Positions 8,335-63,687 of a stretch of 64,000 bases of DNA are shown here, piece after piece. The notes beneath the pieces are model-generated. The model was not told where the DNA came from. It made no database searches and saw only the letters and a list, made by a program, of their open reading frames with translations. Source of the DNA: Macrostomum lignano (Eukaryota); NCBI GenBank assembly GCA_002269645.1, contig NIVC01000888.1, positions 1-64,000 on the forward strand, read 5' to 3'. Made by a program: the position numbers and the translations under genes. Numbering within the stretch: position 1 is the first letter of the stretch; each line of letters starts with the position of its first letter.

Positions 8335-10536
8335 CACTAAAAGCACCAAGGCTTATGCACAGTAGATAAAAACTGTAGTGGAATGGAGATTGAGAACAAC
8401 ATGAACTACGGGTATTATATCAGCTGATACCCCACTAGCTTCCAAGACTCAGAAGAGCCAGAGCCCAAAACCAGTCGACACTTGTTTAAAATTCAAAAAG
8501 GGCACTTGCTGGATCATGGCAAAAAGTGGGAGGGGGCTTCAGCCCCCCCCCCCGATTCCGACACCCCTGTCCAGCATACATGTACATGTGTACATGTATC
8601 TGATTATGTCCGCTATTAGCAAATTAGGTACACTTTATTGAAATTAAATTGGGCTGCTAAAACTTGCTTCTGCCCCAGAAAAAAACATGTTGTTAGCTCG
8701 GGTAGCCTCATACATCAGTCATGAGAAGGAGTCGTACATGTCACTAGCCTGTCAGGGGCAACGAGTTTGTAGGGTACGCAGCTGTAAATACAGATTTTTT
8801 TAAATTGTTTTTTAAATGAGTTTTACAGAACATATTCGTGGGTTGTTACTTAATAGTAGAATTTCTGGGCAGATATAGGTGTAAATAATCAATCCAATTA
8901 TTGTAAACCAATTTTTTTAAATGATGTAGTCAGCTTAACAAAAAATAAACGTCGTTTTTGGAGATTTAACCAAAAATTAAAAGGCTGTTTATTAGGATAT
9001 AAAAATAAAAAACTAAATCTAATTAAAAAGAATGATTTTTACACATTAACTGGCTTTTTCCTTAATAACACGATTGAAGAGAGAAATTGCCTTTGAACGA
9101 AATTTTAATTTTTGGCTGTGTGTGTAGCGCAAGGATGTCGACGACGTCACCTGGCAATTCTGCCTGTGTTTGCCTGAAGGATACAAAAATTAAGCCATAA
9201 AGAGTTAAAAACTCAAAATAACAGTTGTATTCCATAGACTACACAGTATACACATGGGATAGAATTAGTTAATGCGTAGGCCTAATAGTAATAGTTTCAT
9301 CTGATAAGGTTTGTGGGAGATTAGGCGTAAGGCGTATGTATAACTGTAGGTCTAGGCCTATGCTACAATAGATTGAAATAATAGTTAATTGAATGATGTC
9401 TTATTGTATTTATAGACCAAGGGCCTGATGCTAATGACATGTTAAATATAGGCCCTATCTCTAATGGAAGCAATGGAAGCAAAATACAAAGGCAGTAAAA
9501 AATTCCCCTTCCAGGGGAACATGCCCTTAGGCCTTTATCCCCCCTTTTGGCTATGCCCTTGATTATGTTATGTATAGGCCTATATATAGTATTGTAGTAT
9601 ATTTGTAGTATAATTGTATTATGTATATATGTTGATAGCTGCATCTGTATCTATGCCAAAATTTCTTCTGTTAACTTTTTTATATAAATGAAACAGATTA
9701 AGCAGGTTAGCCCCCTTAATTAATTTCAAAGTGCAACATAGGCCTTACTATGTTGTGTTGTTTCCAAATAAAATATATAACATAGCCATAGGCCTATGTT
9801 TGAATTTTTTAAATGATTTTAATTCAAATTAAAACTTGAATTTCAACATTGAATTACAATAAAGTATAAATGTTTTTTTAAACAGAATAATAAACAATGA
9901 TAAACAATTTATGAATAAATCTAAATAACTAAATATGATTTTAACCTTTTATAATCACAAATTAATACTTTTTTCAAGCTCAATTCTCTATATACATTTG
10001 GTATCAAAGTAAATATAATTAAAAACAAGGTTACTTCATCAATTGCAAATACTACTACCCTTGCCAAAATTCAAATAGTCACTTTGTCAATTGCAAATAC
10101 TGCTACCCTTACCAAATAGTCAACCATTTGACAAAATGCTAATTGACAAAGTGATTAGCATCTAAAAAGGGTTAGAGATGAATAAATATTGCCAATTTCA
10201 AAAAATAAAAGGAACTTTTAAGTCCTTGGAATTTAGAACTTAAGCCAAGGCAAGCAATATAAAGAAAAGGGAGCAAAGATTAATAAATGATAAGGGAACA
10301 TCATATATTTTGTGCATTAAGCCTTTGGGGGTTTCATGACTAGCTTTCAAATTTAAGGTTTCAAAGCATATAAAGATGATGCTATTTAGTTTAGTTATTA
10401 GTTTAATACTACCCCTTAGTCCCTTAGTCTTATTAGTTTAACACTACCATATTATACTAAAAAAGTGCAATTGTAATGAATATGAGGATTTGTAATGAAT
10501 ATGAGGAATTCTAAGTATACTAACATATTTTAAAGT

Positions 10537-14290: not shown

Positions 14291-14349
14291 CCTGAGTGAA
14301 TGACGCAATGACCAACCTCCAACCCGGTGCATGCCAGATCCAGCCAGTC

Positions 14350-15363
14350 ATGTCCGAATCGACCGACGTACCGAGCGTTGAAGATTTGAGTCGGATGAAA
14401 CTGAAGGAGCTCAAAGAGCAGTGCAAAGCGGCCGAGCTGCCAGTCACGGGCTCAAAGAAGGAGCTGGTCGAGCGGCTTCATGAATTGCTGGTCAAGCGGG
14501 CCGAAGACAGCCTGCTGGAAGGGGACGCCATAACGTCAGCCCCGCAACCGGCTGTGGTGCCGCCGTTAAAATTGAAGCTGGCGGCTCCAGCGGCTGCTGC
14601 TGCTGCTCCCGCTGCTTCGAAACCCGCTGCTAGCGAAGGCGCGGCGGCACCCGCTACGGCCAACAGCGAGGCCGCCTCCTCAGCTAAGAAAGTCCGACTC
14701 ACCCAGCCGGCTGGGGCCGCCGCCGCTGCCGCTGCTGCTCCGGAAACCGCCGCTCCTCCGGCCGCCTCTCCGCCGAAGCCTGCAGCGGCAAGCAAGCCGA
14801 GCGAAGCTGAGCTGCTGGCCCTGCGAGCCAAGCGATTCGGCGCCGCTGCTGCCGCCACCAACGACGAGATGGAGAAGCGCAAAGCTCTGCGCGCCGAACG
14901 ATTCGGCGCCGGCGCCTCAGCTGACGATGTCGAGAAGCGAAAGGCCCTACGCGCTGAACGATTTGGCACCGGAGGCGGCGGCGACGGGATCTCCGCCGAA
15001 GACATGGAGAAGCGGAAGGCCCTGCGCGCCGAGCGATTCGGCATCGGAGCAAGCGGTGGCGATGGCGCGAGCGCCGAGGAGCTCGAAGAGCGAAAGCGCA
15101 AGCGGGCCGAGCGGTTCGGCCTCGCTGCCGCATCCAGCGGAGCCGCTCCAGCCGCCGCCGCCACCACCGCCGCAGCTTCGTCGACAGCGGAGGCGGAGCG
15201 GCTGCGCATCCGGGCGGAGCGATTCGGGCTGGCCAAGCCGGCCGCTGAGGCGGACGCCGAGGCTGCCAGGCTGAAGGCGCGCGCCGATCGGTTCAACCTG
15301 CCGCCAACCAACGAGGAGAAGCTGCAGCTGCGAGCGGCCCGGTTCAACATCAGCTCGGCCTGA
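14350..15363 (+). CDS. SARNP: SAP domain-containing ribonucleoprotein (SARNP/CIP29/Tho1 family), intronless
   Basis: N-terminal SAP domain LSRMKLKELKEQCKAAELPVTGSKKELVERL, Ala/Pro linker, then eight RAxRF[GN] motifs. ATG 14350 chosen by homology (14308 is also in frame). AATAAA near 15491. Confidence 0.88.
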   Translation: MSESTDVPSVEDLSRMKLKELKEQCKAAELPVTGSKKELVERLHELLVKRAEDSLLEGDAITSAPQPAVVPPLKLKLAAPAAAAAAPAASKPAASEGAAAPATANSEAASSAKKVRLTQPAGAAAAAAAAPETAAPPAASPPKPAAASKPSEAELLALRAKRFGAAAAATNDEMEKRKALRAERFGAGASADDVEKRKALRAERFGTGGGGDGISAEDMEKRKALRAERFGIGASGGDGASAEELEERKRKRAERFGLAAASSGAAPAAAATTAAASSTAEAERLRIRAERFGLAKPAAEADAEAARLKARADRFNLPPTNEEKLQLRAARFNISSA

Positions 15364-25400: not shown

Positions 25401-28400
25401 AACTGAAGCGACATTTTGAAACAATAAAAGCGACATTTTGACCGACAACTGAAGCGACATTTTTGACCAACAACTGGAGCGACATTTTTACCAACAACTG
25501 AAGCGACATTTTTACCAACAACTGAAGCGACATTTTGACGGACAACTGAAACGACATTTTGACCGACAATAAAAGAGACATTTTGACCGACAATTAAAGC
25601 GACATTTCGACCGACAACTGAAGCGACATTTTTGATTGACAATTAAAGCGACATTTTACCAACAACTAAAGCGACATTTTGACGGACAGTTTGAAGCGAT
25701 ATTTTGACTGAAGACTGAAACGACATTTTGATGGACAATTTGAAGCGACATTTTGACCGACAAATGAAACGACATTTTGACCGAAAATAAAAGCGACATG
25801 TTGACCGACAATAAAAGCGACATTTTGACCGACAATAAAAGCGACATTTTGACTGACAATTAAAGCAACATTTTGACCGACAACTAAAGCGACATTTTGA
25901 CTGACAATTAAAGCGACATTTTGACCGACAACTGAAGCGACATTTTTGACCGACAATTAAAGCGACATTTTACCAACAACTAAAGCGACATTTTGACGGA
26001 CAGTTTGAAGCGATATTTTGACTGAAGACTGAAACGACATTTTGATGGACAATTTGAAGCGACATTTTGACCGACAAATGAAACGACATTTTGACCGACA
26101 ACTGAAACGACATGTTGACCGACAATAAAGGCGACATGTTAACCGACAATAAAAGCGACATTTTGACCGACAATTAAAGCGACATTTTGACCGACAATTA
26201 AAGCGACATTTTGACCGACAACTAAAGCGACATGTTGACCGACAATAAAAGCGACATTTTGACCGACAATGAAAGCGACATTTTGACCGACAATTAAAGC
26301 GACATTTTGACCGACAACTGAAGCGACATTTTGACCGACAACTGAAGCGACATTTTGACCGACAACTGAAACGACATTTTGACCGACAACTAAAGCGACA
26401 TGTTGACCGACAATGAAAGCGACATTTTGACCGACAATGAAAGCGACATTTTGACTGATAAAGAACTCACCTGCAGTTCCTGGTCCCGCTGCAGCTCTAA
26501 TATCTTCAACGTAAGCAGGTCGCCAAGCTCTTCCCGTTTCGGAGCAACCCCAATTCCGTAGCCTTTGCTATCGATGAGGCCGCCGATCTGCTGCAGATTG
26601 CATTCCCGCTCAATGTGATATTCAATCATAGCCGATTCCATCAGGAAAGCGTAGCCGCCTTTCTTCACCCGCTCGATGCCGGCGCTAGTAGTGGCAGTTT
26701 TCACGCCGGGCCTGGCGCGCATGTACTAGGCCATGCGGGAATAAGTGGCAATGTGAGAAGTCTCAAAGAATGCCTCAGTTGAGCCGCCGCTGAGCAGGCC
26801 GTACTCGATAGCGGTCTGGTTGGACAGCTCCTCGGCATTTTTAATCGGCATCACCACCAGTTCGACAGTGAGAAAGGCGGCCAGATTAGCCGTATAGGAG
26901 CTAATTAATATCAAGGTGAAAAACCACCAGATGACGCCAACTAATCTGCTGCTAGCCGCTCGGGGACTGATATCCGAGCCCTGCTGCATCAGGGTGCCAA
27001 CTGTGAACCAGAATGCGTTGGATAATGACAGTTCGTTCACTAGGTAGGGCGGGTCAGCCACACAAGGGTACGGATTGGTCCATTCGTAGGGCGACAGCCG
27101 GCCCAGCAGGTTAATGATGCCGGTAGTAACCAGGTAGGCCGCCAGCACGCACACCCACACTTCAACCGCTAACGGCATCAGAAAGCTAAACAAGCCTGGC
27201 TTTTCACCTTTCGGCCGTTTAAACAATATGCTAATACCCAGATTCATAAACGGCTTAGTGAAATCAATCACTCGCTCGCGTTCGTAGGTGATGGTGAAGG
27301 AGCCAAGTGCGATGTCGGCCCGGCCGGAGACCAGCTCGGCCATCATGCCGTTCCATTGGCACTGGCAGGGATCAGCCGATCCGTTGCTGGCTAATCTGTC
27401 GTGACAGCCGGGCGGTTTAACGCAGCTACCATATTTATCGTCTGGCGATCGGTACACACTCCATTTCAGGCCCGTTCGATTGGCAATCAATCGAATCATG
27501 TCCACGCAGAAGCCTTCCAGATGATGCGCGTGAAACTCCACCCCGGGCAGGATGTGCCCGCCCGGGCTCAGGTAGCGGGACCGGTGCTCGCGCTTGATCC
27601 ACACAAACGGCTGGGCGGCCACCACCACGGCGCGGAGGCGGCGACCGTGCAGTCGGCCGCCAGTAGGGAAGTCGCCGGAAGTTGACTGCTGGCCAGATGG
27701 CCGCTTCCGGTTGGGCAACTTCAAGCGGCCAGCGGAGTCGCAGCTGGCCAACCGGACCAGTCCGGTGTCCCGACGCTGATGAAGCACTACCAGTCCGCCA
27801 GGGGATTCTGGTCTTGACAAGTTAACCGGCGGCGACTCAATTGGAGCTCGAACGCCTCGACTGAATCGGATGGGGCCGGTTAAACCTGTGCTGGGCAGGT
27901 CCACCGAGTGCAGATAGTTCCACAGGCTGGTGCCTAGTGGCCACGGGGAACTGGCGGCTTGGTTGGGCCTGGCCGAGCAGCGGGAGAAAGCCGAGCCACT
28001 GCTGCCGCTGCCGTTGCCGCCATTGTGAACCAGCTGACGGCTTCTGTGCAAATCGGCCAGAGCTTTTAGCAGCACCTGGGTTAACGGTACATGGAATGTC
28101 CTTTCAAAACTAAAATAGATTTTTGTGAGTGCAAGAAACAACTAGGAAATTAATATTAATAAGAAACTGAAGGCAGCTAGGGAGAAGCCAACTATGAAAG
28201 AAAAAAGATATTAAAGAAGAGGAGAGAAAAGAAAATATAAAGAATGAGACTAGAAAAAGTGAGAAATGAGAAAAGAGGATAGAAAAGAGATGAGAATAGA
28301 AGAGAGATGGGATGAGAAAAGAAGAGAGAAGAGATGAGAGAAGAAGAGACAAGAGATGAGAAACGTAGAGAGAAGAGATGAGAGAAGAGAGAAGAGATGA

Positions 28401-31400
28401 GAAAGGAAAAGAGAAGATATGAGAGAAGAGAGAAAAGATAAGAAAGGAAGAGAGAAGAGATGAGAGAAGAGAGAAAAAAGAAAGAGAGATGGGATGAGAA
28501 AAGAAGAGAGAAGAGAGAAGATATGAGAAACGTAGAGAGAAGAGATGAGAAAAGAGATGAACGAAGATATGAGAAACGTAGAGATAAGAGATGAGAAAAG
28601 AAGAGAAGAGATAAGAAAGAGATAAGAAAAGACAAGAATAAATCAAAGCGAAGATCCCTAAAGCAGTCATACCCTAGCCAACTCACCTGAGCCGCATCGT
28701 ACACCAGCGCCACCTCCAGAGCCAGGTGCCCATCCGGTTCCAACGGCCCGAATTCTTCGTCCTCAGGCCTGACCGCATGGCGGCCGCTATCGCCGCTGTC
28801 ATCCGACGCCGAGCCGACGCCAACGCCTACTCGAAGCTGCCGCTGGCGTTGCCAGTCGCGAAGGCCGGCCAGCACTCGATCGTAGTGCTGCCGATCCGAT
28901 GGCTCCAGTCTAAACGCCGTGATATTGAACAGGCTGCCATGGTAGGCAGCGGCCAGGTGGGCGCTGTTTAAATTAGCCAACACGTAGTGATAGGAGCCGC
29001 CTAGCATGCCCAGCGCGGCAGCGGTTCTTAGAAAATGAGCAGCGCTAGCCGGGCTCAGGTCCAGCACTACGGTGGCCCAGCCGGAGGCTTCAATCTCCGC
29101 TAGCAGGGGCTCAGGCCCGGCCGCTATTGAATACCGCCTAGTGCGCAAGTAGAGAGTCTCAGGCGAAACTCGACGCCTCAATGCCGCTTCTAACCTGAGC
29201 CAGGCTCGTAAATCTTCGTAGACGTAGAGAGCCTCATGCCAATCGAAATAGTCGATAGCGGAGCTCAGACAGGCTGCCAGCTGTTCCAGCGGCGGGTGCA
29301 GACGCAGCAGGAATGGCGGAGCGGCCGACGGCTGGTCGGCTCGGCCAGGTGCGGCCAGAGATTCCGAAGGTCTCAGATCGATAATTGGCGCCTGAGTGGC
29401 GCTAGCAATAGCGGCCAGATCGGCGCTAGTCAGAGCCGGGTGATCAGGGCCGATCAGGGCTAGAGCGCCAGTGTTTAATAGTCCGCAGGCGGCTAGATAG
29501 GCTCTAGTGGCGTCCCTGTCCGGCACCATGGCAACCAGGGGACGCGGACGTATCGATTGAGCGGCGGCCGGACAGCCAGCAGGTGACTCCAGTTCGAAAC
29601 CGAGGTCGGCCAGAGCGAACCGAAGCGCGCTCCGTTTTCTTGCGTCACCGATGGACTGGCCGAACACGGCTCCGATTGGCAGGTCGGCGGCTGCCGGACA
29701 ATCGGAGGCCTCGTTGCTGCTGCCAGCTACTAGAAGCAGACTAAGATGCAATGCCGACAATAGATAATGCATCGTTCACTTGCTACGTGGAGCCATGCGG
29801 TTTAATTTGATGGATTCTAATTTTTTATCAATTTGATAAGCACTGGAAGCTAGAACAGGCTTGACAGGCAGTTTATAATTCCGATATGGGCAGCTGGGGG
29901 GGGGGGAGGAGAGCTCATGCGAGCAGCAGCAAGTCCGCCTAATTAAATATGCGCATTAGCGACTTGGGCAGGTGAGGATGCGCAAATAAAATAGCGAGGT
30001 CAACGTGGGGGGGGGGGGGAACAGTCATGGATCTAAGCAGCTGCGTATGATGTTTCATTGGGTATGGTAATATATTTTAAGGTGGATGCGGGTCAGCTTC
30101 CAGTCTAGGCATCTAAAGGTCCCTGGTAGATTTTGGGTGGGGTGCAGGTGCAGGTCCGCTTCCATTCCAAGCATTTATCAGAGGTCCCTACTAGATTTTA
30201 AGATGGACAGGTCCGCTTCTAGTCCAGGCATCCCCAAGAGGTCCCTGAAAGATTTTGGGGTGGGTACCCACTTCCATTCCAGGCATCCAGAGTCCAGACG
30301 TCCCTGAAATATTTTCCGGTCTGCTTCACTGCTTCCAGTCCAGGCATCCAGACGTCCCTGGTGTATCATTACGTTGCCAAACCAACACTGTAAAGACTAC
30401 GCTTCTGAGTACTACTGACTTAATAGTAGCAAACCGATTTCGTAGTGTTTACATAAAAATAGGTAACATCAGAGAACATTAAAGGTCAAGAATGCTCTAA
30501 CCTCATCATCGTCGTCCAGGCCCTCGCCAGTGAAACACAGCACAGCCCTGGACACAATTCGTTCCCGGATGAAATGCCCAATTTCGAAGTCCGACTGTAG
30601 CAGATTTTCAATCTCCTCGTCCTATAGCAATTTAAAAAGGAAACAAAAGTGAAAAATTACACTTTTAAGTTCGAGCCACGCTACTTTAAGTAACAATATA
30701 GAAATTTAACAGAACTTAAAATAGTTAAAAACGAAAAAAGAAAATCTGGATAAAAATAAAACCCTTTTGCTCTAACCTCGGAATCCTGAGTGGCGGTTAA
30801 GTAAAATTCCATTACTAATTAGATACTAAAGTGCGCTAAGTTTTTAAGTCAAATAACACAAAAAACAATTACGCAGCTTACATCATCATTGAGGTCGTCA
30901 ATGGCTGAAAAAAGGAAGCAAGCATTGTGAATTTATCTTTTGCAGGGTCCATGCACATAAAGTTTTTTTTTACAGTGAAAGGACACATTTTTTCCATAGC
31001 TATTAATCGTAAGTCCTTATCTTATAAACCAGGAAACCCGCAGGATACTAGGGGGGAGATTGTTTATATGCATTTTGAACTACTATTAGTAGTTTTCGTT
31101 TAGTAAAATATTAGAAGTTAGGTTAGGTAGGGGCATGATAACATCTACCAAGCAAATGTAAAAAACCTAGCTTATAGAGGCTTTTGTTTGTTTAAGCGTG
31201 CGTCCAGTAGCTGAAAATCCATAAACTGATGAATCCGCCTCTAGGCCTAATCTGGAATAAAATTTAAATGTCCTTCAACTCACCCTGCGTAGGCGGATTG
31301 AAGAAATTAAAGAACGAATCGGTCTCCACAGTTTTAGTGAGCGTCCGCTTCTGACCGTTGCCGCGATGGCGTTGCACTTTTTTAAGAATCTTCACCGTCA

Positions 31401-39450: not shown

Positions 39451-41082
39451 CGGCCAATAGGAAGGCCGCGCATATTTTATGCTAGCCTAAAATTAAGCTT
39501 TCCTTGTGCGCCCACCCCCAGCCCGCTCGTTAATCATTTGTGACGATTAAGGACGACACGGTCAAATGACGAAGACGAATAACGGAGGCGATTTGTGTAG
39601 TAGCGGTAGCACTCAGGCTTACATGTAGTTGTTATGTTATCGATTATTTATTATGGTTAGATAGACTCGCTCGCTATAGATCCCAGTCGGCAATGTAATA
39701 GTGGGACTGGGCCTGATTTGGCGCTGAATCCGAACTATGATACTTTGGGCACTGCGGCAGGCAACAATAATGGTAATGGATAGCTATAGGCTACGGCGAT
39801 AAGTGGCGAAGGAATGATGGCAATGGTGTAGAACTATGGAGAAGTGCCGCGAAGTGGCGGCGGTGGAAGTGTGGCGTGATCCCCACTCGGGGCAGTGGCG
39901 TGGCTTGAATTTGCCGGGGTGAACTTGGCCGAGGCGGGGAGAGAGAGAGCGCCGGTCGGTAAACAAGAACAAAACAAGAACCAAGAAACAAGCCAACCCC
40001 GGGCGCGCCAGCTAGACAGGACTTACATGTTAACGAGCGGGTTGGGGTGGGCGCACAACAAAGCATAATCCGGACTTAACATAAAATATGCGCAACTTTC
40101 CTATTGGCCGGCTTGAAAACCAACTTGAAAACAGACATTATATGGCACTGCTTTCGCTAAAACGGCCCTTGTCGGGGCCACCTCAACTGACAACGTCACA
40201 CAGTCCTGTCTGGCTGGGGCGCCCGGGGTTGACCCTCTTTTGTTTTCCGGCCCGCGCTCTCTCTCTCTCCGCCTCGGCCAAGTTCACTCTGCCAAGTTCA
40301 CTCCGCCAAGTTCACTCCGCCAAGTTCACTCCGCCAAGTTCACTCCGCCAAGTTCACTCCGCCAAGTTCACTCCGCCCAAGTTCACTCCGCCAAGTTCAC
40401 TCCGCCAAGTTCATTCCGCCAAGTTCACTCCGCCAAGTTCACTCCGCCCAAGTTCACTCCGCCAAGTTCACTTCGCCAAGTTCACTCCGCCCAAGTTCAC
40501 TCCGCCAAGTTCACTCCACCAAGTTCACTCCACCAAGTTCACTCCGCCAAGTTCACTCCACCAAGTTCACTCCGCCCAAGTTCACTCCGCCAAGTTCACT
40601 CCGCCCAAGTTCACTCCGCCAAGTTCACTTCGCCAAGTTCACTTCGCCAAGTTCACTTCGCCAAGTTCACTCCGCCCAAGTTCACTCCGCCAAGTTCACT
40701 CCGCCAAGTTCACTCCGCCCAAGTTCAAGCCACGCCACTGCCAAGTTCAAGCCAGAGAGAGTGCTGCCTCTATCCTATCTCATTGCCATCATATCATCAC
40801 CACTCCATCGCCCGTAGCCTATTTAGCTATCCATCACCATTATTGTTGCCTGCCGCAGTGCCCAAAGTTACGTTACGTAACTTTACCATAGTTACGGATT
40901 CAGCTTCCAATCAGGCCCAGTCTCTTTATTGCCGACTGGAATCTATAGCGAGCGAGCCTATTTAACCATAATAAATAATCGCCATCGCATCGCCATTGTA
41001 TGAGTGCTACCGCTACACAAATTGCCTCCGTTATTCGTCTTCGTCATTTGATCCTGGGACTGTGTCGTCATAATCGTCACAA
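39451..41082. repeat. Interlocked inverted repeats X-Y-X'-spacer-Y' with a 14-bp array expanded in Y'
   Basis: X 39451-39533 is the reverse complement of 40030-40110. Y 39538-40023 is the reverse complement of 40202-41082. Array (GCCAAGTTCACTCC)n at about 40278-40750. Confidence 0.85.
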
Positions 41083-43184: not shown

Positions 43185-43724
43185 CTAAGTTGTCAAAGCT
43201 TTCGTGATTGGAGTTTCCTCGGTGCTAGCTGGTGCTGCCGGCGGATGAGGCTGATCAACGGCGGATGCAGCAGCCGCAGCCGCAACCTCCTGCACCTCCT
43301 CGTAAGTCGGCGGCGGAACCAGCACTCCGTAGATGGTGAAAACTGGCCCGTCGTACTCCAGCGCGTACAGCGGCGGCGGCGGCGGGAAGCTGCCGTGCGG
43401 CACCGAGCCGGACTCGCCATCGTCGCCAGCAACGCCGCCTCGATGCCCCCGTCGCCGATGGTGCAGCTCGAATTTGTCATTATTGCGAATGGCCAGCCAG
43501 CGGAAGCCGAACAGGCCGGCGAACATGAGAAAGATGCTGGGCAGCGGCACGATGAAGTACACGTAGTCACGCTGGACGGCGTACAGCGACAGACAGGCAA
43601 AGAAGGCGACCAGGCCGCACCAGAGCAGCACGTGGAACAGGCAGTACAGGCTGCGGTCCTTGGCCGAGAATGCTCGGATCACTCGGAGCGGAAAGCAGGG
43701 CATCAACTGGCAGCACTTGGCCAT
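43185..43724 (-). CDS. Uncharacterised 179-aa protein with two transmembrane helices and two PPxY motifs, intronless
   Basis: GC-rich ORF from ATG 43724; hydrophobic segments SLYCLFHVLLWCGLVAFFACLSLYAV and YVYFIVPLPSIFLMFAGLFGFRWLAI; tail PPPPPLY and VPPPTYEEV. Confidence 0.72.
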   Translation of the reverse strand: MAKCCQLMPCFPLRVIRAFSAKDRSLYCLFHVLLWCGLVAFFACLSLYAVQRDYVYFIVPLPSIFLMFAGLFGFRWLAIRNNDKFELHHRRRGHRGGVAGDDGESGSVPHGSFPPPPPLYALEYDGPVFTIYGVLVPPPTYEEVQEVAAAAAASAVDQPHPPAAPASTEETPITKALTT

Positions 43725-43914
43725 TTCTGTTTGCTGCTTTGGCTTGAGGATCAAAGCAGATAAACAAGCGCGCAGCAGCGAGACAGAGAGAGAGAGAGAG
43801 AGAGAGTTGTTGCAAGACCTGCTCAAGCTGAACTTAAATAGCCCTTTGCTCTGGCATTGGACAGCTCATTGTGCTTCTGTGACCAGATCGCTCCAGGCAA
43901 ATGCGGTTTGTTTT

Positions 43915-43915
43915 C

Positions 43916-43964
<49 letters not shown>

Positions 43965-43989
43965 TTTCCCTCTCTCTTTCTCTCTCTCA

Positions 43990-44075
<86 letters not shown>

Positions 44076-44085
44076 ACCTCTCACT
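43915..44085. repeat. (CT)n microsatellite
   Basis: Direct reading. Confidence 0.95.
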
Positions 44086-44931
44086 CTTCTCTAGCCAGCC
44101 AGGGTCACTCCAATGCTGTTTACAACAGTGCCAATGCTGAATTTCACCTTTCGCTGACATTTCTTATGCGAGTTGGGTCTGTGTGACGTGTTTTTTTCAG
44201 CAAAAACAATCGGTTAGTATTTTTAACCCTGCGTTCATCGCTAATCTACAGCAGAGGAGCAACCTGTTGAGGGAAGGGAATGCGCATAACTATACAAGCA
44301 ATATTTGCTAATTAGCAGCCAACGTAATTCTCGAAACTGCCGGTTTCTTTTCGAAGGCCTCAGAAAGACTGACTATATGACCCGTGACCAAAATTTGCAT
44401 ATTAATTTATCGAAATCAAAACATTAACTCGAAACCATGTACGTATTAGTTCAAGTGCACAGCGATATGTGCTTGTAATTCAATCAGCAAACTTATAAGT
44501 TATAACAAAAGTGCTCGATTCGAAAGTACACACTGCTATTTCATTATGCTAAATATATACTTGACAGGTGACAAACAAATTGAAGGCTGACGTTATTATT
44601 GTAACAATCATTTCGATTGTGACGAGTAGATAGCGGAAATGGAATGATAAAAAATAGTAGATAGCGGCTACTGAGGAGTAGACAATAGATACTGAAGAGT
44701 AGGCAGTAGATACTGAAGAGTAGACAGTAAAGATGCTGAAGAGAGGTACTGCAGAGTAGACGGTGGATACTGAAGAGTAAACAGCGGATATGGAAAAGTA
44801 GAGAAAACGGAGATCAAGAAGCTTCAATACAAAAATGGCAATATATTCAATGCAGTTCGTACTGCTTCATGATTTATTAGATTTTTAACAATGAAAGCAT
44901 GAAATAAGTATGTTTTTCGTAAAGTAATTTG

Positions 44932-45462
44932 TCAAACTACTAGAAGCTGCTTGCTGGCATGGTGAGGCAGCTGGGCGTTCTTGTCATCCACCGGAAGCTG
45001 CCGCCATCTGCGCCGCTGTACAATGACCAGCAGGACCAGAGCTGCAACGGCTCCGGCTGAGGTAGCCAGGCTGATCGCGCATAAGACTTTCCACATCGTC
45101 ACTTTCTTGACCAACGACACGTCAGCAGCATCGGCATCAGCGGTTGCATCCAACGACGTCTTCGAGTGCCGACGTCTCCAACCGCATCCAGCGGCAGTTG
45201 CTGACCCCTGCAGCCCCTCAGCCCGATCTCTGGCCGTCAGGCAGTAGCCGCAGGCTCGCAACTCGGCGCAGAAGCTTCTCAACAGCATCGCGGTGGAGCT
45301 TGAATTTTTGTCCTCGATGGTCAGACAGTCAGTCGGACAGTGGACGCAGATGTCGACGAACATGTCCGGGTACTGGCCTGTCGGACAGCAGATCTCGGCT
45401 TGCTGAACCGGAATGGCGCTGAACGCGGCTAGGAAAATGATGAAGATTTGAATCTGCGGCAT
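44932..45462 (-). CDS. Single-pass membrane protein with one cysteine-rich domain, TNF-receptor-like (BCMA/TACI/Grindelwald-type), intronless
   Basis: Signal-like MPQIQIFIIFLAAFSAIPVQQA, CRD CPTGQYPDMFVDICVHCPTDC..C..C, TM VLCAISLATSAGAVAALVLLVIV, stop-transfer QRRRWR, short tail. An upstream in-frame ATG also exists at 45549. Confidence 0.68.
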   Translation of the reverse strand: MPQIQIFIIFLAAFSAIPVQQAEICCPTGQYPDMFVDICVHCPTDCLTIEDKNSSSTAMLLRSFCAELRACGYCLTARDRAEGLQGSATAAGCGWRRRHSKTSLDATADADAADVSLVKKVTMWKVLCAISLATSAGAVAALVLLVIVQRRRWRQLPVDDKNAQLPHHASKQLLVV

Positions 45463-46979
45463 TGCGGAGCTGCTTGAGTTGCAATTAGCGAGGGAGCTGG
45501 CATTCTGAGTGGGCCCTGCATTCGTAGGCAATATTAATTTTTTTTCCATAATTTCCGCGTCAAACCCGCGGCCTACTCAAGGCAAATCCGCGGCTGTTTC
45601 TGTCTCCCCGGATTTTCCCCCGGAACCCCCGGATTTGCCGTGGAACTGTTCTGGCGGCGTTGGCCCGGGCATGCTGTTGGCTTTTATCACTTTTAAGCAC
45701 ACAGTGACAAGGGCTCGGCTTTGGTGTACATTTTATTGCGTACACCATTGCAATTGAAACCTGCGCACTCATTGTTGTTCTCTAGATAGAAGCTCAAGTG
45801 GACTGGCAGAAGCAACTGCTTCTGCCAAGGACAACTCAAGTTAGATATCTAGTTTGGAAATCTGAATTTTGCCACACCTACGAGGGTACAATAATGTTAA
45901 TTAATACCGTATGAAATGACGCTCCCTCTTCTCTTACGTTTGCTCAAAGTTGCAGCAAAGGTCTTATATACTCCCTATTCAAACCTTTGATTGTCAATCC
46001 AGACTCTGTCTAAAGGACTCCTTGGGCCTGAGAGTGCAGCAGTCCATTGTTTGTCATAGCAAGGCAACTTCACCAAGAAAGGTACAGCTATATTTTGCAT
46101 ATTTCGTCATGCTCGCATTCCAGTCTTAAGAATCCGAATACTAGATGGAGAACCGGTTCTTCAACGAGCGTTATTTCTGTTATACTGCCAAGTTTCAACA
46201 AATGTAACGTCTAGGCCAGAGAGTACGCCCCGTACTTTTGCTAATATCATTCTTTTAATGCCTTCAAGTAGGAAACTGGTAGGTAGAGACGTATTCTGGT
46301 ATAAACTCGAGGCTTTGGATAGCTGAAGTTGAAAGAAGCAACGTTCGAAAATATATTATTCAACAACATCGAAAGTCGCCATCACAGAAGATTCCGTCTG
46401 TGGTTGCCACTTTTGAGAATGCAAGTACAGTCTCTCAATCTTTGCGAGTGACGCAGCTCAGCTACGCCGCGGCAGACTTGAGTTGAGGAATGAAGTGAAG
46501 GGAGCGGTGTGCGAGAGTTGGACTGATTAAAGCCACCCCGATCAGTTTTCTCAATTTCAGAATAGTCCAAGATAAACTGCTCACTGGCATATAGAATGGC
46601 GACTTTTCAATGTTGCTGAGTATAAGGTCGTGTGATTTTCACTTGAGGCTATCAACTAACGAAAGTTCTAAGCAAATATAAATATTTTAGAAATTTAATT
46701 TACAATATCTTGCCTTCTGGATTTCTGTAGCTACTGTGCACAATGTTACTAACAGTTAATGTCATTTGAAAAGCAAAAAAATTTATAGCCAAATTTGAAA
46801 TCATATATAGCTCATAATAACCCGAACTGTTTTGGCATACTTGCTCAGCCTATACTACTTAAAAGTAAGTTGTTTACCATTTTTAATATAACTAGTATTC
46901 TAAAAATGAAAATTAGACACTATAGATTGGACAGTAACACCACTCCAGATTCATACAAACATTGAAACACTCATACATA

Positions 46980-47265
46980 ATGGCGCTTATTCACTAACCC
47001 TAATGGCGCTTATACAGTAACCCTAATGGCGCTTATACAGTAACCCTAATGGCGCTTATACAGTAACCCTAATGGCGCTTATGCACTAAACCCAATGGCG
47101 CTTATACAGTAACCCTAATGGCGCTTATACAGTAACCCTAATGGCGCTTATACACTAACCCTAATGGCGCTTATACAGTAACCCTAATGGCGCTTATACA
47201 CTAACCCTAATGGCGCTTATACAGTAACCCAAATGGCGCTTATACACTAACCCTAATGGCGCTTG
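46980..47265. repeat. 23-bp minisatellite containing TAACCCTAA
   Basis: Unit TAACCCTAATGGCGCTTATACAG, about 12 copies. Confidence 0.92.
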
Positions 47266-47699
47266 TACACAGTTACCATTGGTGTTTAGGCAACTCAATT
47301 ATTTCCTGAAAAAAGCAGTTCGAGTCTGACACAGCAAGCTTCATTTAAAACTAATTAAACTGCAACTTTGTCAAGCCATTAGAGAATTACAATCGTATAT
47401 TTATTTAATTCATTATCGAAATAAATAAATCAGGGACAGCTGACAGCACTGCACAACTGTGAGAATGAAGGGCTGTACAAAACACATCCGGGATACAGAA
47501 AAGCATTGTTGATATAGGCTGGCAAAATTGACCCAGAAAAGTTATTAGTGCTTCTAACCAGCTTCTATAGGTATTCAAATGATAATTACATATTTATTGA
47601 TGAAAAGCATATTGTTAGCATGAGCTAGCCAGCTTTACTGAGGTAATTCTGCAGGATTGAGGATGAGAGCAAGTTCAGGTCCGGGTCAATGAGTGACGA

Positions 47700-48400
47700 G
47701 CTGAGTCTCCTCATTCATTCACCCAGTCACCTGTTCACTCATTCATTCACCCAGTCACCTGTTCACTCAATCATTCACCCAGTCACCTGTTCACTCATTC
47801 ATTCACCCAGTCACCTGTTCACTCATTCATTCACCCAGTCACCTGTTCACTCATTCATTCACCCAGTAACCTGTTCACTCATTCATTCACCCAGTAACCT
47901 GTTCACTCTTTCTTTCACCCAAGTCACCTGTTCACTCATTCATTCACCCAGTCACCTGTTCACTCATTCATTTACCCAGTCACCTGTTCACTCATTCATT
48001 CACCCAGTCACCAGCTGTTCACTAATTCATTCACCCAGTCACCTGTTCACTCATTCATTCACCCAGTCACCTGTTCACTCATTAATTCACCCAAGTCACA
48101 TGTTCACTCATTCATTCACCCAAGTCACCTGTTCACTCATTCATTCACCCAGTCACCAGCTGTTCACTCATTCATTCACCCAGTCACCTGTTCGCTCATT
48201 CATTCACCCAGTCACCTGTTCACTCATTAATTCACCCAAGTCACATGTTCACTCATTCATTCACCCAAGTCACCTGTTCACTCATTCATTCACCCAGTCA
48301 CCTGTTCACTCATTCATTCACCCAAGTCACCTGTTCACTCATTCATTTAACCAGTCACGTGTTCACTCATTCATTCAAGCATTCATTCACGCACTGGTTC
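47700..48400. repeat. 28-29-bp minisatellite just 3' of the ML-domain gene
   Basis: Unit CACCCAGTCACCTGTTCACTCATTCATT. Confidence 0.93.

Positions 48401-51415: not shown

Positions 51416-63687
<12,272 letters not shown>

Follow-up and report, generated by a model that had tools for sequence, protein, structure and literature searches.

A candidate divergent tumour necrosis factor receptor with a single cysteine-rich domain in the flatworm Macrostomum lignano

Palmerini et al. 2021 described Grindelwald, a small member of the tumour necrosis factor receptor (TNFR) superfamily, as composed of an X2 and a C2 module, and reported that the hairpins of BCMA, TACI and Fn14 carry a DxL motif at their tip (PMC8024323). 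In flatworms, Bertevello et al. 2020 found one NGFR-like, death-domain-bearing TNFR per species, with one species-specific duplication, as well as TNF ligands in Macrostomum lignano, which are not described there as BAFF/APRIL-like (PMC7519573). Furthermore, a 2026 preprint counts in M. lignano 6 Eiger-like, 16 Wengen-like and 1 Grindelwald-like proteins, the Grindelwald-like type having a single cysteine-rich domain (CRD) with CxxCxxxC; the counts come without accessions, so that its Grindelwald-like protein is not matched to the locus studied here (bioRxiv 10.1101/2024.07.27.603686). Invertebrate single-CRD CxxCxxxC receptors, one in M. lignano included, are already described in that preprint. 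Here we study a gene at 44932-45462 on the reverse strand of the M. lignano assembly GCA_002269645.1, contig NIVC01000888.1, positions 1-64000 (this whole stretch of 64,000 nucleotides is called the window), and we hold the chances to be evenly balanced that its product of 176 amino acids (aa) is a divergent single-CRD, death-domain-less TNFR-superfamily protein.

The coding sequence (CDS) is a single exon of 176 codons plus TGA (44932..45462, ATG at 45462 and TGA at 44934-44932), and its frame is kept across three genomic copies. The product (MPQIQIFIIFLAAFSAIPVQQAEICCPTGQYPDMFVDICVHCPTDCLTIEDKNSSSTAMLLRSFCAELRACGYCLTARDRAEGLQGSATAAGCGWRRRHSKTSLDATADADAADVSLVKKVTMWKVLCAISLATSAGAVAALVLLVIVQRRRWRQLPVDDKNAQLPHHASKQLLVV) is laid out as a small type-I membrane protein, whose features are all given here in coordinates of the reverse strand. 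A putative signal peptide at residues 1-22 (MPQIQIFIIFLAAFSAIPVQQA, 45397..45462) would be cleaved after QQA; the Kyte-Doolittle hydropathy of residues 1-26 averages above 1.6. The entire Cys-rich domain occupies residues 25-74 (45241..45390) with cysteines at 25, 26, 39, 42, 46, 65, 71 and 74, and is followed by an Ala/Asp-rich stalk at residues 75-123 (45094..45240), which carries the ninth ectodomain cysteine (C93) and a tribasic RRR (95-97) and for which Pfam searches with the whole protein and with fragments gave no family match. The protein then continues with one transmembrane (TM) helix at residues ~124-148 (WKVLCAISLATSAGAVAALVLLVIV, 45019..45093; hydropathy 1.85-2.49 over windows 125-150), which includes a further cysteine, C128, and a cytoplasmic tail of 28 aa (QRRRWRQLPVDDKNAQLPHHASKQLLVV, 44935..45018). 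The TM segment begins 50 residues past C74, in agreement with the TNFR topology of an extracellular CRD and one TM within the next ~120 residues. The one N-x-S/T sequon found by a regular-expression search of the translation, N53-S-S, is a putative N-glycosylation site in the C46-C65 loop (45298..45306).

An earlier note on this DNA, made from the letters alone, had proposed a TNFR-like protein with a stalk, one TM segment and a short tail without a death domain ending LLVV, and all of these are present according to hydropathy, translation and Pfam. The tail is too short for a death domain and has no Pfam match. A regular-expression scan of its 28 aa returned no canonical TRAF2, TRAF6, dileucine or YxxPhi motif. 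The note had counted two more cysteines after the motif described below, where the translation has four (65, 71, 74 and 93).

The likeness to TNFRs lies in residues 26-46 (CPTGQYPDMFVDICVHCPTDC, 45325..45387), a hairpin and CxxCxxxC stretch picked up by a TACI CRD1 hidden Markov model (HMM), by hhalign, by a generic CRD HMM and by the first half of the PROSITE pattern PS00652. The spacing C-x3-Q-Y-x-D-x5-C-x2-C-x3-C that the note had read there is exact in the translation (C26-PTGQ-Y31-PDMFVDI-C39-VH-C42-PTD-C46), and its Cys spacing, C-x12-C-x2-C-x3-C, is identical to that of 74 TACI CRD1 sequences and of BCMA (PDB 4zfo_F), a chain with which the human BCMA string given in the note is likewise identical. 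We assign residues 26-39 as a probable A1-type hairpin, with C26 and C39 as its cysteines, Y31 as its aromatic residue and D33-M34-F35 as its tip, the CxxCxxxC opening a second module. CPxGxY is a hallmark opening of A1 modules (NGFR, TNFR1 and others); human NGFR CRD1, which is recognised by the Pfam family TNFR_c6, begins CPTGLY, to be compared with CPTGQY in the flatworm protein.

The match in this stretch is better than chance, though of borderline significance. On an HMM built from 74 distinct CRD1 sequences of mammalian TACI proteins, the whole protein scored 13.1 bits (P=4.7e-6), the ectodomain by itself 14.1 bits, with model columns 1-21 aligned to residues 26-46 at 12-14 bits and the alignment ending at column 21. 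This score was reached by 2/20000 full composition shuffles and by 44/20000 shuffles in which the cysteines were held fixed; therefore part of the signal comes from the P, Q, Y and D residues and not from the Cys spacing alone. Comparison by hhalign with TACI CRD1 gave a probability of 58% (P=1e-4), and also stopped at column 21. Among 1059 six-frame open reading frame (ORF) segments of the window, the ORF at 44932-45462 was the top match for the TACI HMM (E=0.006) as well as for a Grindelwald HMM made from 31 dipteran CRDs. Furthermore, the first half of PS00652, C-x(4,6)-[FYH]-x(5,10)-C-x(0,2)-C-x(2,3)-C, is present in residues 26-46. When the 73-aa ectodomain was shuffled with its composition preserved, CxxCxxxC arose in 8.5% of the shuffles, the first half of PS00652 in 3.5% and the exact spacing of the cysteines in 0.6%; on its own, that spacing is weak evidence.

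Small CRDs such as those of BCMA, TACI and Grindelwald scarcely recognise one another by profile. BCMA against TACI gave 15.9 bits by phmmer; Grindelwald gave -1.7 bits on the TACI CRD1 HMM and -8.3 bits on a TACI CRD2 HMM; on the Grindelwald HMM, BCMA reached 11.6 bits and TACI CRD2 7.7 bits. On the generic HMM, made of 20 canonical human CRDs which are all recognised by PF00020, TACI CRD1 scored 11.3 bits, BCMA 11.0 bits (shuffle p 0.0009), TACI CRD2 7.6 bits (p 0.007), the window ectodomain 5.4 bits (best domain 9.1, p 0.009) and Grindelwald -0.4 bits (p 0.08). On this scale the flatworm domain falls between two structurally proven TNFRs, TACI CRD2 and Grindelwald, and lies within the score range of proven atypical members, which is consistent with membership and no proof of it.

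An automatic annotation points the same way. The UniRef name of the paralogue A0A267GUH6, which is 97% identical, is "TNFR-Cys domain-containing protein", a label that presumably derives from the PROSITE profile PS50050. No paper that mentions the gene identifier Mlig018180 turned up in a text search of the literature.

A number of observations weigh against TNFR membership, and the first of them concern the extent of the match. Only 21 of the ~50 domain residues align to TNFR CRDs, and none of the 176 residues outside 26-46 does. The second half of the domain (residues 47-74) has the non-canonical spacing C46-x18-C65-x5-C71-x2-C74, which matches no described module, the canonical B2 pattern included, and the complete six-Cys PS00652 (...C-x(7,11)-C-x(4,6)-[DNEQSKP]-x2-C) is absent, with an 18-residue loop after C46. 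The ectodomain has an odd number of cysteines, nine in all (25, 26, 39, 42, 46, 65, 71, 74 and 93). At the scale of a proteome of ~70,000 gene models, P=5e-6 becomes E ~0.3. The TACI CRD2 HMM gave 1.6-5.3 bits, which is not significant, and neither is the score on the Grindelwald HMM (2.3-3.7 bits; shuffle p 0.017 for full and 0.11 for Cys-fixed shuffles), to which hhalign assigned a probability of 4%. In the profile check that the earlier note had proposed, TACI CRD1 thus gave a match, at 13-14 bits, and TACI CRD2 and Grindelwald gave no significant one.

Searches beyond these models weigh in the same direction. No Pfam family matched the whole protein or four ectodomain fragments at E<=10, and PF09257, PF09305 and PF09256 (BCMA, TACI and BAFF-R) as well as TNFR_c6 (PF00020) were silent at that threshold. 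This silence is weak evidence, because 38/38 Grindelwald orthologues are also without a Pfam match and human EDAR reaches 18 bits on TNFR_c6 against a gathering cut-off of 29.4. A phmmer search of all PDB sequences returned only a Fab (E=2.9). A word-indexed search of 5.8 billion proteins and a full phmmer search of 1.84 billion representatives returned only M. lignano copies; therefore there is no alignment depth to gain. Structure prediction by AlphaFold2 (AF2) gave low confidence, with a predicted local distance difference test score (pLDDT) of 47.8 for the single sequence and of 47.9 for residues 22-100 with an alignment that included the TACI CRD1/CRD2 and Grindelwald CRDs, a design that is partly circular, and Foldseek of the guided model against PDB gave 0 matches. 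Both runs placed a helix at ~residues 55-70, in keeping with a helical second module though with little confidence (pLDDT 55-62), and residues 47-74 are probably helical; an AF2 helix at residues 110-154 spans the predicted TM.

Two further points against membership come from the copies of the gene. The TNFR-Cys name sits on the paralogue and not on this allele, and the paralogue differs within the domain (C25S, D37C), where one cysteine occupies a different site. In addition, there is no clear purifying selection between the window copy and the one on NIVC01000142.1: their CDSs differ at 10 nucleotides spread over 9 codons, with 6 nonsynonymous and 4 synonymous changes and a mismatch density like that of the upstream flank. 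The proposal of a divergent single-CRD TNFR is, in sum, sustained by the layout and by the first half of the domain on the TACI CRD1 HMM, and left without support by the second module, Pfam and Foldseek.

The alternative that survives best is that of a Cys-rich type-I membrane protein which is restricted to its lineage and has no relation to TNFRs, whose CPxGxY...C-x2-C-x3-C would be due to chance or convergence and which could serve in adhesion, as a secretory-cell or gland product, or as an orphan receptor. We consider this possible, if somewhat doubtful. Homologues confined to M. lignano, the lack of a Pfam or PDB match and the uninformative structure prediction are what such a protein would show; its score nevertheless falls among those that proven small TNFRs obtain against each other, and both the topology and the distance from CRD to TM suit TNFRs. 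The Cys spacing alone turns up in 0.6-8.5% of shuffles, but the non-Cys residues contribute signal of their own, as seen in the 44/20000 Cys-fixed shuffles. While the second half of the domain fits no TNFR module, the first half has the typical A1 opening CPxGxY known from NGFR, TNFR1 and others. The ORF was chosen for its resemblance, which makes the test post hoc, and at proteome scale E is ~0.3; the TNFR-Cys label on the paralogue was, on the other hand, assigned independently, although PROSITE profiles can misfire on Cys-rich sequences.

Described TNFRs offer further comparisons. Fn14 (TNFRSF12A) resembles the flatworm protein by its single CRD, by an A1 hairpin with C-x12-C-x2-C, by a C-x2-C pair at the end comparable to the flatworm C71-GY-C74 and by a very short tail, and differs from it by C-x2-C-x2-C, an 8-residue loop and a TRAF site in the tail. 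Grindelwald (PDB 6ZSY/6ZT0; PMC8024323) is likewise a small type-I receptor with a single CRD, without a death domain and unrecognised by Pfam, in which CxxCxxxC opens a helical module. In contrast, its X2 hairpin has four cysteines (C-x4-C-x6-C-x6-C) with two intercalated disulfides, where the flatworm hairpin region has only C25, C26 and C39, and its second helix carries a C-x3-C (x12-C-x3-C) that is not in the flatworm protein. The platyhelminth NGFR-like TNFRs (SmTNFR family; PMC7519573) are flatworm members of the superfamily, of which M. lignano has one, but they have four canonical CRDs and a death-domain-like tail, whereas the 176-aa protein has a single, atypical CRD and is without a death domain, and the survey that described them did not pick up this protein. 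TNFR homology of the 176-aa protein is probable, and on the sequence comparisons made here we class it as a probable divergent single-CRD member of the superfamily that belongs to neither the BCMA/TACI nor the Grindelwald family.

A closer tie to vertebrate receptors would make the protein a true member of the BCMA/TACI/BAFF-R lineage, with a DxL-type tip acting on a BAFF/APRIL-like ligand, and would date this receptor type to the bilaterian ancestor. We regard this as very unlikely. The flatworm protein shares C-x12-C-x2-C-x3-C with both BCMA and TACI CRD1, it is likewise without a death domain as these small type-I or type-III receptors are, and TACI CRD1 was the best-scoring of the models tried; the aligned stretches, CPEEQYWDPLL..C..C...C in TACI CRD1 and CPTGQYPDMFV..C..C...C in the flatworm protein, have the aromatic residue and the Asp at the same hairpin positions, and Q, Y and D share columns. 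The TACI model is, however, drawn from mammals only and its score rewards few identities (P, Q, Y and D), and the model of TACI CRD2, the ligand-binding domain, is not significant at 1.6 bits. The earlier note had pointed to the ligand-binding DxL hairpin of BCMA, whereas the flatworm tip is D33-M34-F35: the Asp is kept and the change from Leu to Phe is conservative, yet it falls on the key residue of the tip. The second module of BCMA and TACI, x8/x7-C-x3-C, is not found, the flatworm spacing being x18-C-x5-C-x2-C; the flatworm protein has three extra ectodomain cysteines and its tail is without a TRAF motif; and the Pfam families for BCMA, TACI and BAFF-R are silent. There is no phylogenetic evidence for the lineage, and the TNF ligands published for M. 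lignano are not described as BAFF/APRIL-like (PMC7519573). None of these comparisons reveals a specific kinship with BCMA/TACI, and the bearing on the origin of BAFF/APRIL-type receptors that had been claimed for the locus falls away, with no orthologue outside M. lignano in 1.84 billion representative proteins.

That 44932-45462 is a real, transcribed, single-exon M. lignano gene is indicated by several lines of evidence. The gene models of the assembly were built from RNA-seq transcripts only, with an expression filter in reads per kilobase per million (RPKM) and ORFs called by TransDecoder (PMC5730564). A gene model is present at all three loci, and therefore transcription is implied; that the ORF is not transcribed, which the earlier note had named as fatal to its proposal, is unlikely. 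The CDS has a GC content of 58%, and of 68% at third codon positions (GC3), against 40-45% in the flanks, and shows the codon-position signature GC3>GC1>GC2, contrasting with the AT-rich flanks. An AATAAA polyadenylation signal lies 54 nt past the stop codon (44873..44878 on the reverse strand), with ATTAAA at the matching place of the paralogous locus.

The assembly holds three syntenic copies, in the window, on NIVC01001326.1 and on NIVC01000142.1, and in all three the gene order is a xanthine dehydrogenase, the 176-aa gene, a PPxY-bearing membrane ORF and a NAP-domain gene. This three-copy picture agrees with the neopolyploidy and known redundancy of the M. lignano assembly (PMC5730564). 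A search of the window with the protein by tblastn found no second copy or relative within the 64 kb. The CDS on NIVC01001326.1 is identical to that in the window, and this copy is uninformative for selection, as ~1 kb is identical, non-coding DNA included. The identical stretch takes in 300 bp upstream and 200 bp downstream of the gene, and the further flanks differ by 2-3% plus indels (44200-45760 was compared); it could reflect recent gene conversion or the assembly of near-identical subgenome copies. The copy on NIVC01000142.1 encodes P0001 (PAA89675.1), also of 176 aa and 97% identical, whose model starts MPQIQ. From the window to this copy the amino-acid changes are A13S, I17V, C25S, D37C (two bases) and N162D, and the 531 nt of the CDS are without indels while the flanks carry many.

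An ORF that arose fortuitously in a transcribed GC-rich segment and was called by TransDecoder would account for the near-neutral substitutions between copies (6 nonsynonymous, 4 synonymous) and for the lack of a homologue elsewhere and of direct protein evidence, but it is the least likely of the alternatives and highly improbable, given a coherent type-I layout (signal peptide, Cys-rich ectodomain, TM, basic stop-transfer and short tail) that chance would hardly produce, the GC3>GC1>GC2 coding signature against AT-rich flanks, the 0 indels in 531 nt with many in the flanks, and the poly(A) signal 54 nt past the stop.

The copies also bear on the start codon. A database model of 205 aa begins at an upstream ATG at 45549 and includes an in-frame extension (MEKKLILPTN..., 45463..45549 on the reverse strand). 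We rejected this model: at the NIVC01000142.1 locus the A-run directly after the upstream ATG has a 1-bp deletion, so that this ATG no longer shares the frame of the ORF. Because this deletion disrupts the upstream start, the 176-aa frame is the conserved one, and 45463-45549 is probably a 5' untranslated region, which would leave the 29 N-terminal residues of the 205-aa model untranslated.

One cysteine shifts between the copies, with C25/D37 in the window and on NIVC01001326.1 and S25/C37 on NIVC01000142.1. Codons 37 and 25 lie at 45352-45354 and 45388-45390 on the reverse strand of the window, and at 10073-10075 and 10109-10111 in L001. Both versions retain nine ectodomain cysteines and C128, and D37C takes two base changes in one codon. 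The odd count hints at a free or intermolecular cysteine; without an outgroup, the direction of the change is not polarised.

Several other features surround the gene. Downstream, at 43185-43826 on the reverse strand, a neighbouring ORF of ~180-213 aa has two hydrophobic segments, two PPxY motifs (PPPPLY and PPPTY) and no Pfam match, and all three loci have a gene model of 179-212 aa at the equivalent downstream position. The upstream neighbour in all three copies is represented in the window by a C-terminal exon of a xanthine dehydrogenase/aldehyde oxidase gene (MoCoBD_2; 51900-52745, reverse strand), and at the paralogous locus the gap between xanthine dehydrogenase and the 176-aa gene is much shorter. 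Dense tandem repeats lie around the gene at 44669-44802, 43917-44092, 40273-40727, 46978-47269 and 47710-48377, with repeat units of 21 bp, (TC)88, 14 bp x32, 23 bp x12.7 and 28 bp x23; the 21-bp units stand directly 3' of the poly(A) signal and vary in copy number among loci. Farther away, an uninterrupted ORF of 1353 aa at 57017-61078 on the reverse strand, with aspartyl protease, reverse transcriptase, RNase H and integrase domains, is the pol of a Ty3/gypsy-type LTR retroelement and looks intact. Two adjacent long ORFs at 26726-29772 on the reverse strand are exons of a gene for an ionotropic glutamate receptor and encode ANF_receptor, Lig_chan-Glu_bd and Lig_chan domains, and an ORF at 14296-15363 on the forward strand has SAP and Tho1/MOS11 domains.

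Under the hypothesis that the 176-aa protein is a divergent single-CRD TNFR, it would be a small type-I protein with a cleavable signal peptide, one divergent CRD, an N-glycan site, a stalk of ~50 aa, a TM helix and a 28-aa tail. Its domain would consist of an A1-type beta-hairpin closed by C26-C39, with the aromatic Y31 and an Asp-x-hydrophobic tip (D33-M34-F35), from which the CxxCxxxC would lead into a probably helical second module. Three receptor copies may dock on the trimer of an endogenous TNF-family ligand, chiefly via the hairpin, as in BCMA, TACI, Fn14 and Grindelwald. The tail, without a death domain or canonical TRAF motifs, would suggest signalling by contact with a non-canonical adaptor, or a role as co-receptor or decoy. 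Terminal valine motifs are known to act in ER export or PDZ binding, and the terminal -VV may accordingly aid ER export or bind a PDZ protein. A role in wound or JNK signalling, which the earlier note had raised, is pure speculation. A more specific form of the hypothesis, in which a second module of a new kind follows a BCMA/TACI-type A1 hairpin and the protein binds a flatworm TNF ligand through that hairpin, we consider a long shot.

The value of the locus is limited by the TNFR-Cys label that its sister copy already carries, by the Grindelwald-like receptor already on record for M. lignano in the preprint, and by a homology that is unproven and comes without detectable relatives elsewhere, so that it says little on the origin of BAFF/APRIL receptors. 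Should the protein prove to bind a flatworm TNF ligand through its hairpin, the focused hairpin-tip recognition of BAFF/APRIL/TWEAK receptors would predate vertebrates, and flatworms would own a second, death-domain-less class of TNFR beside the NGFR-like one, possibly in wound signalling. A second TNFR, with a single CRD and no death domain, in a regenerating, transgenesis-ready flatworm with TNF ligands of its own would then offer a simple system of ligand-receptor pairing outside insects and vertebrates.

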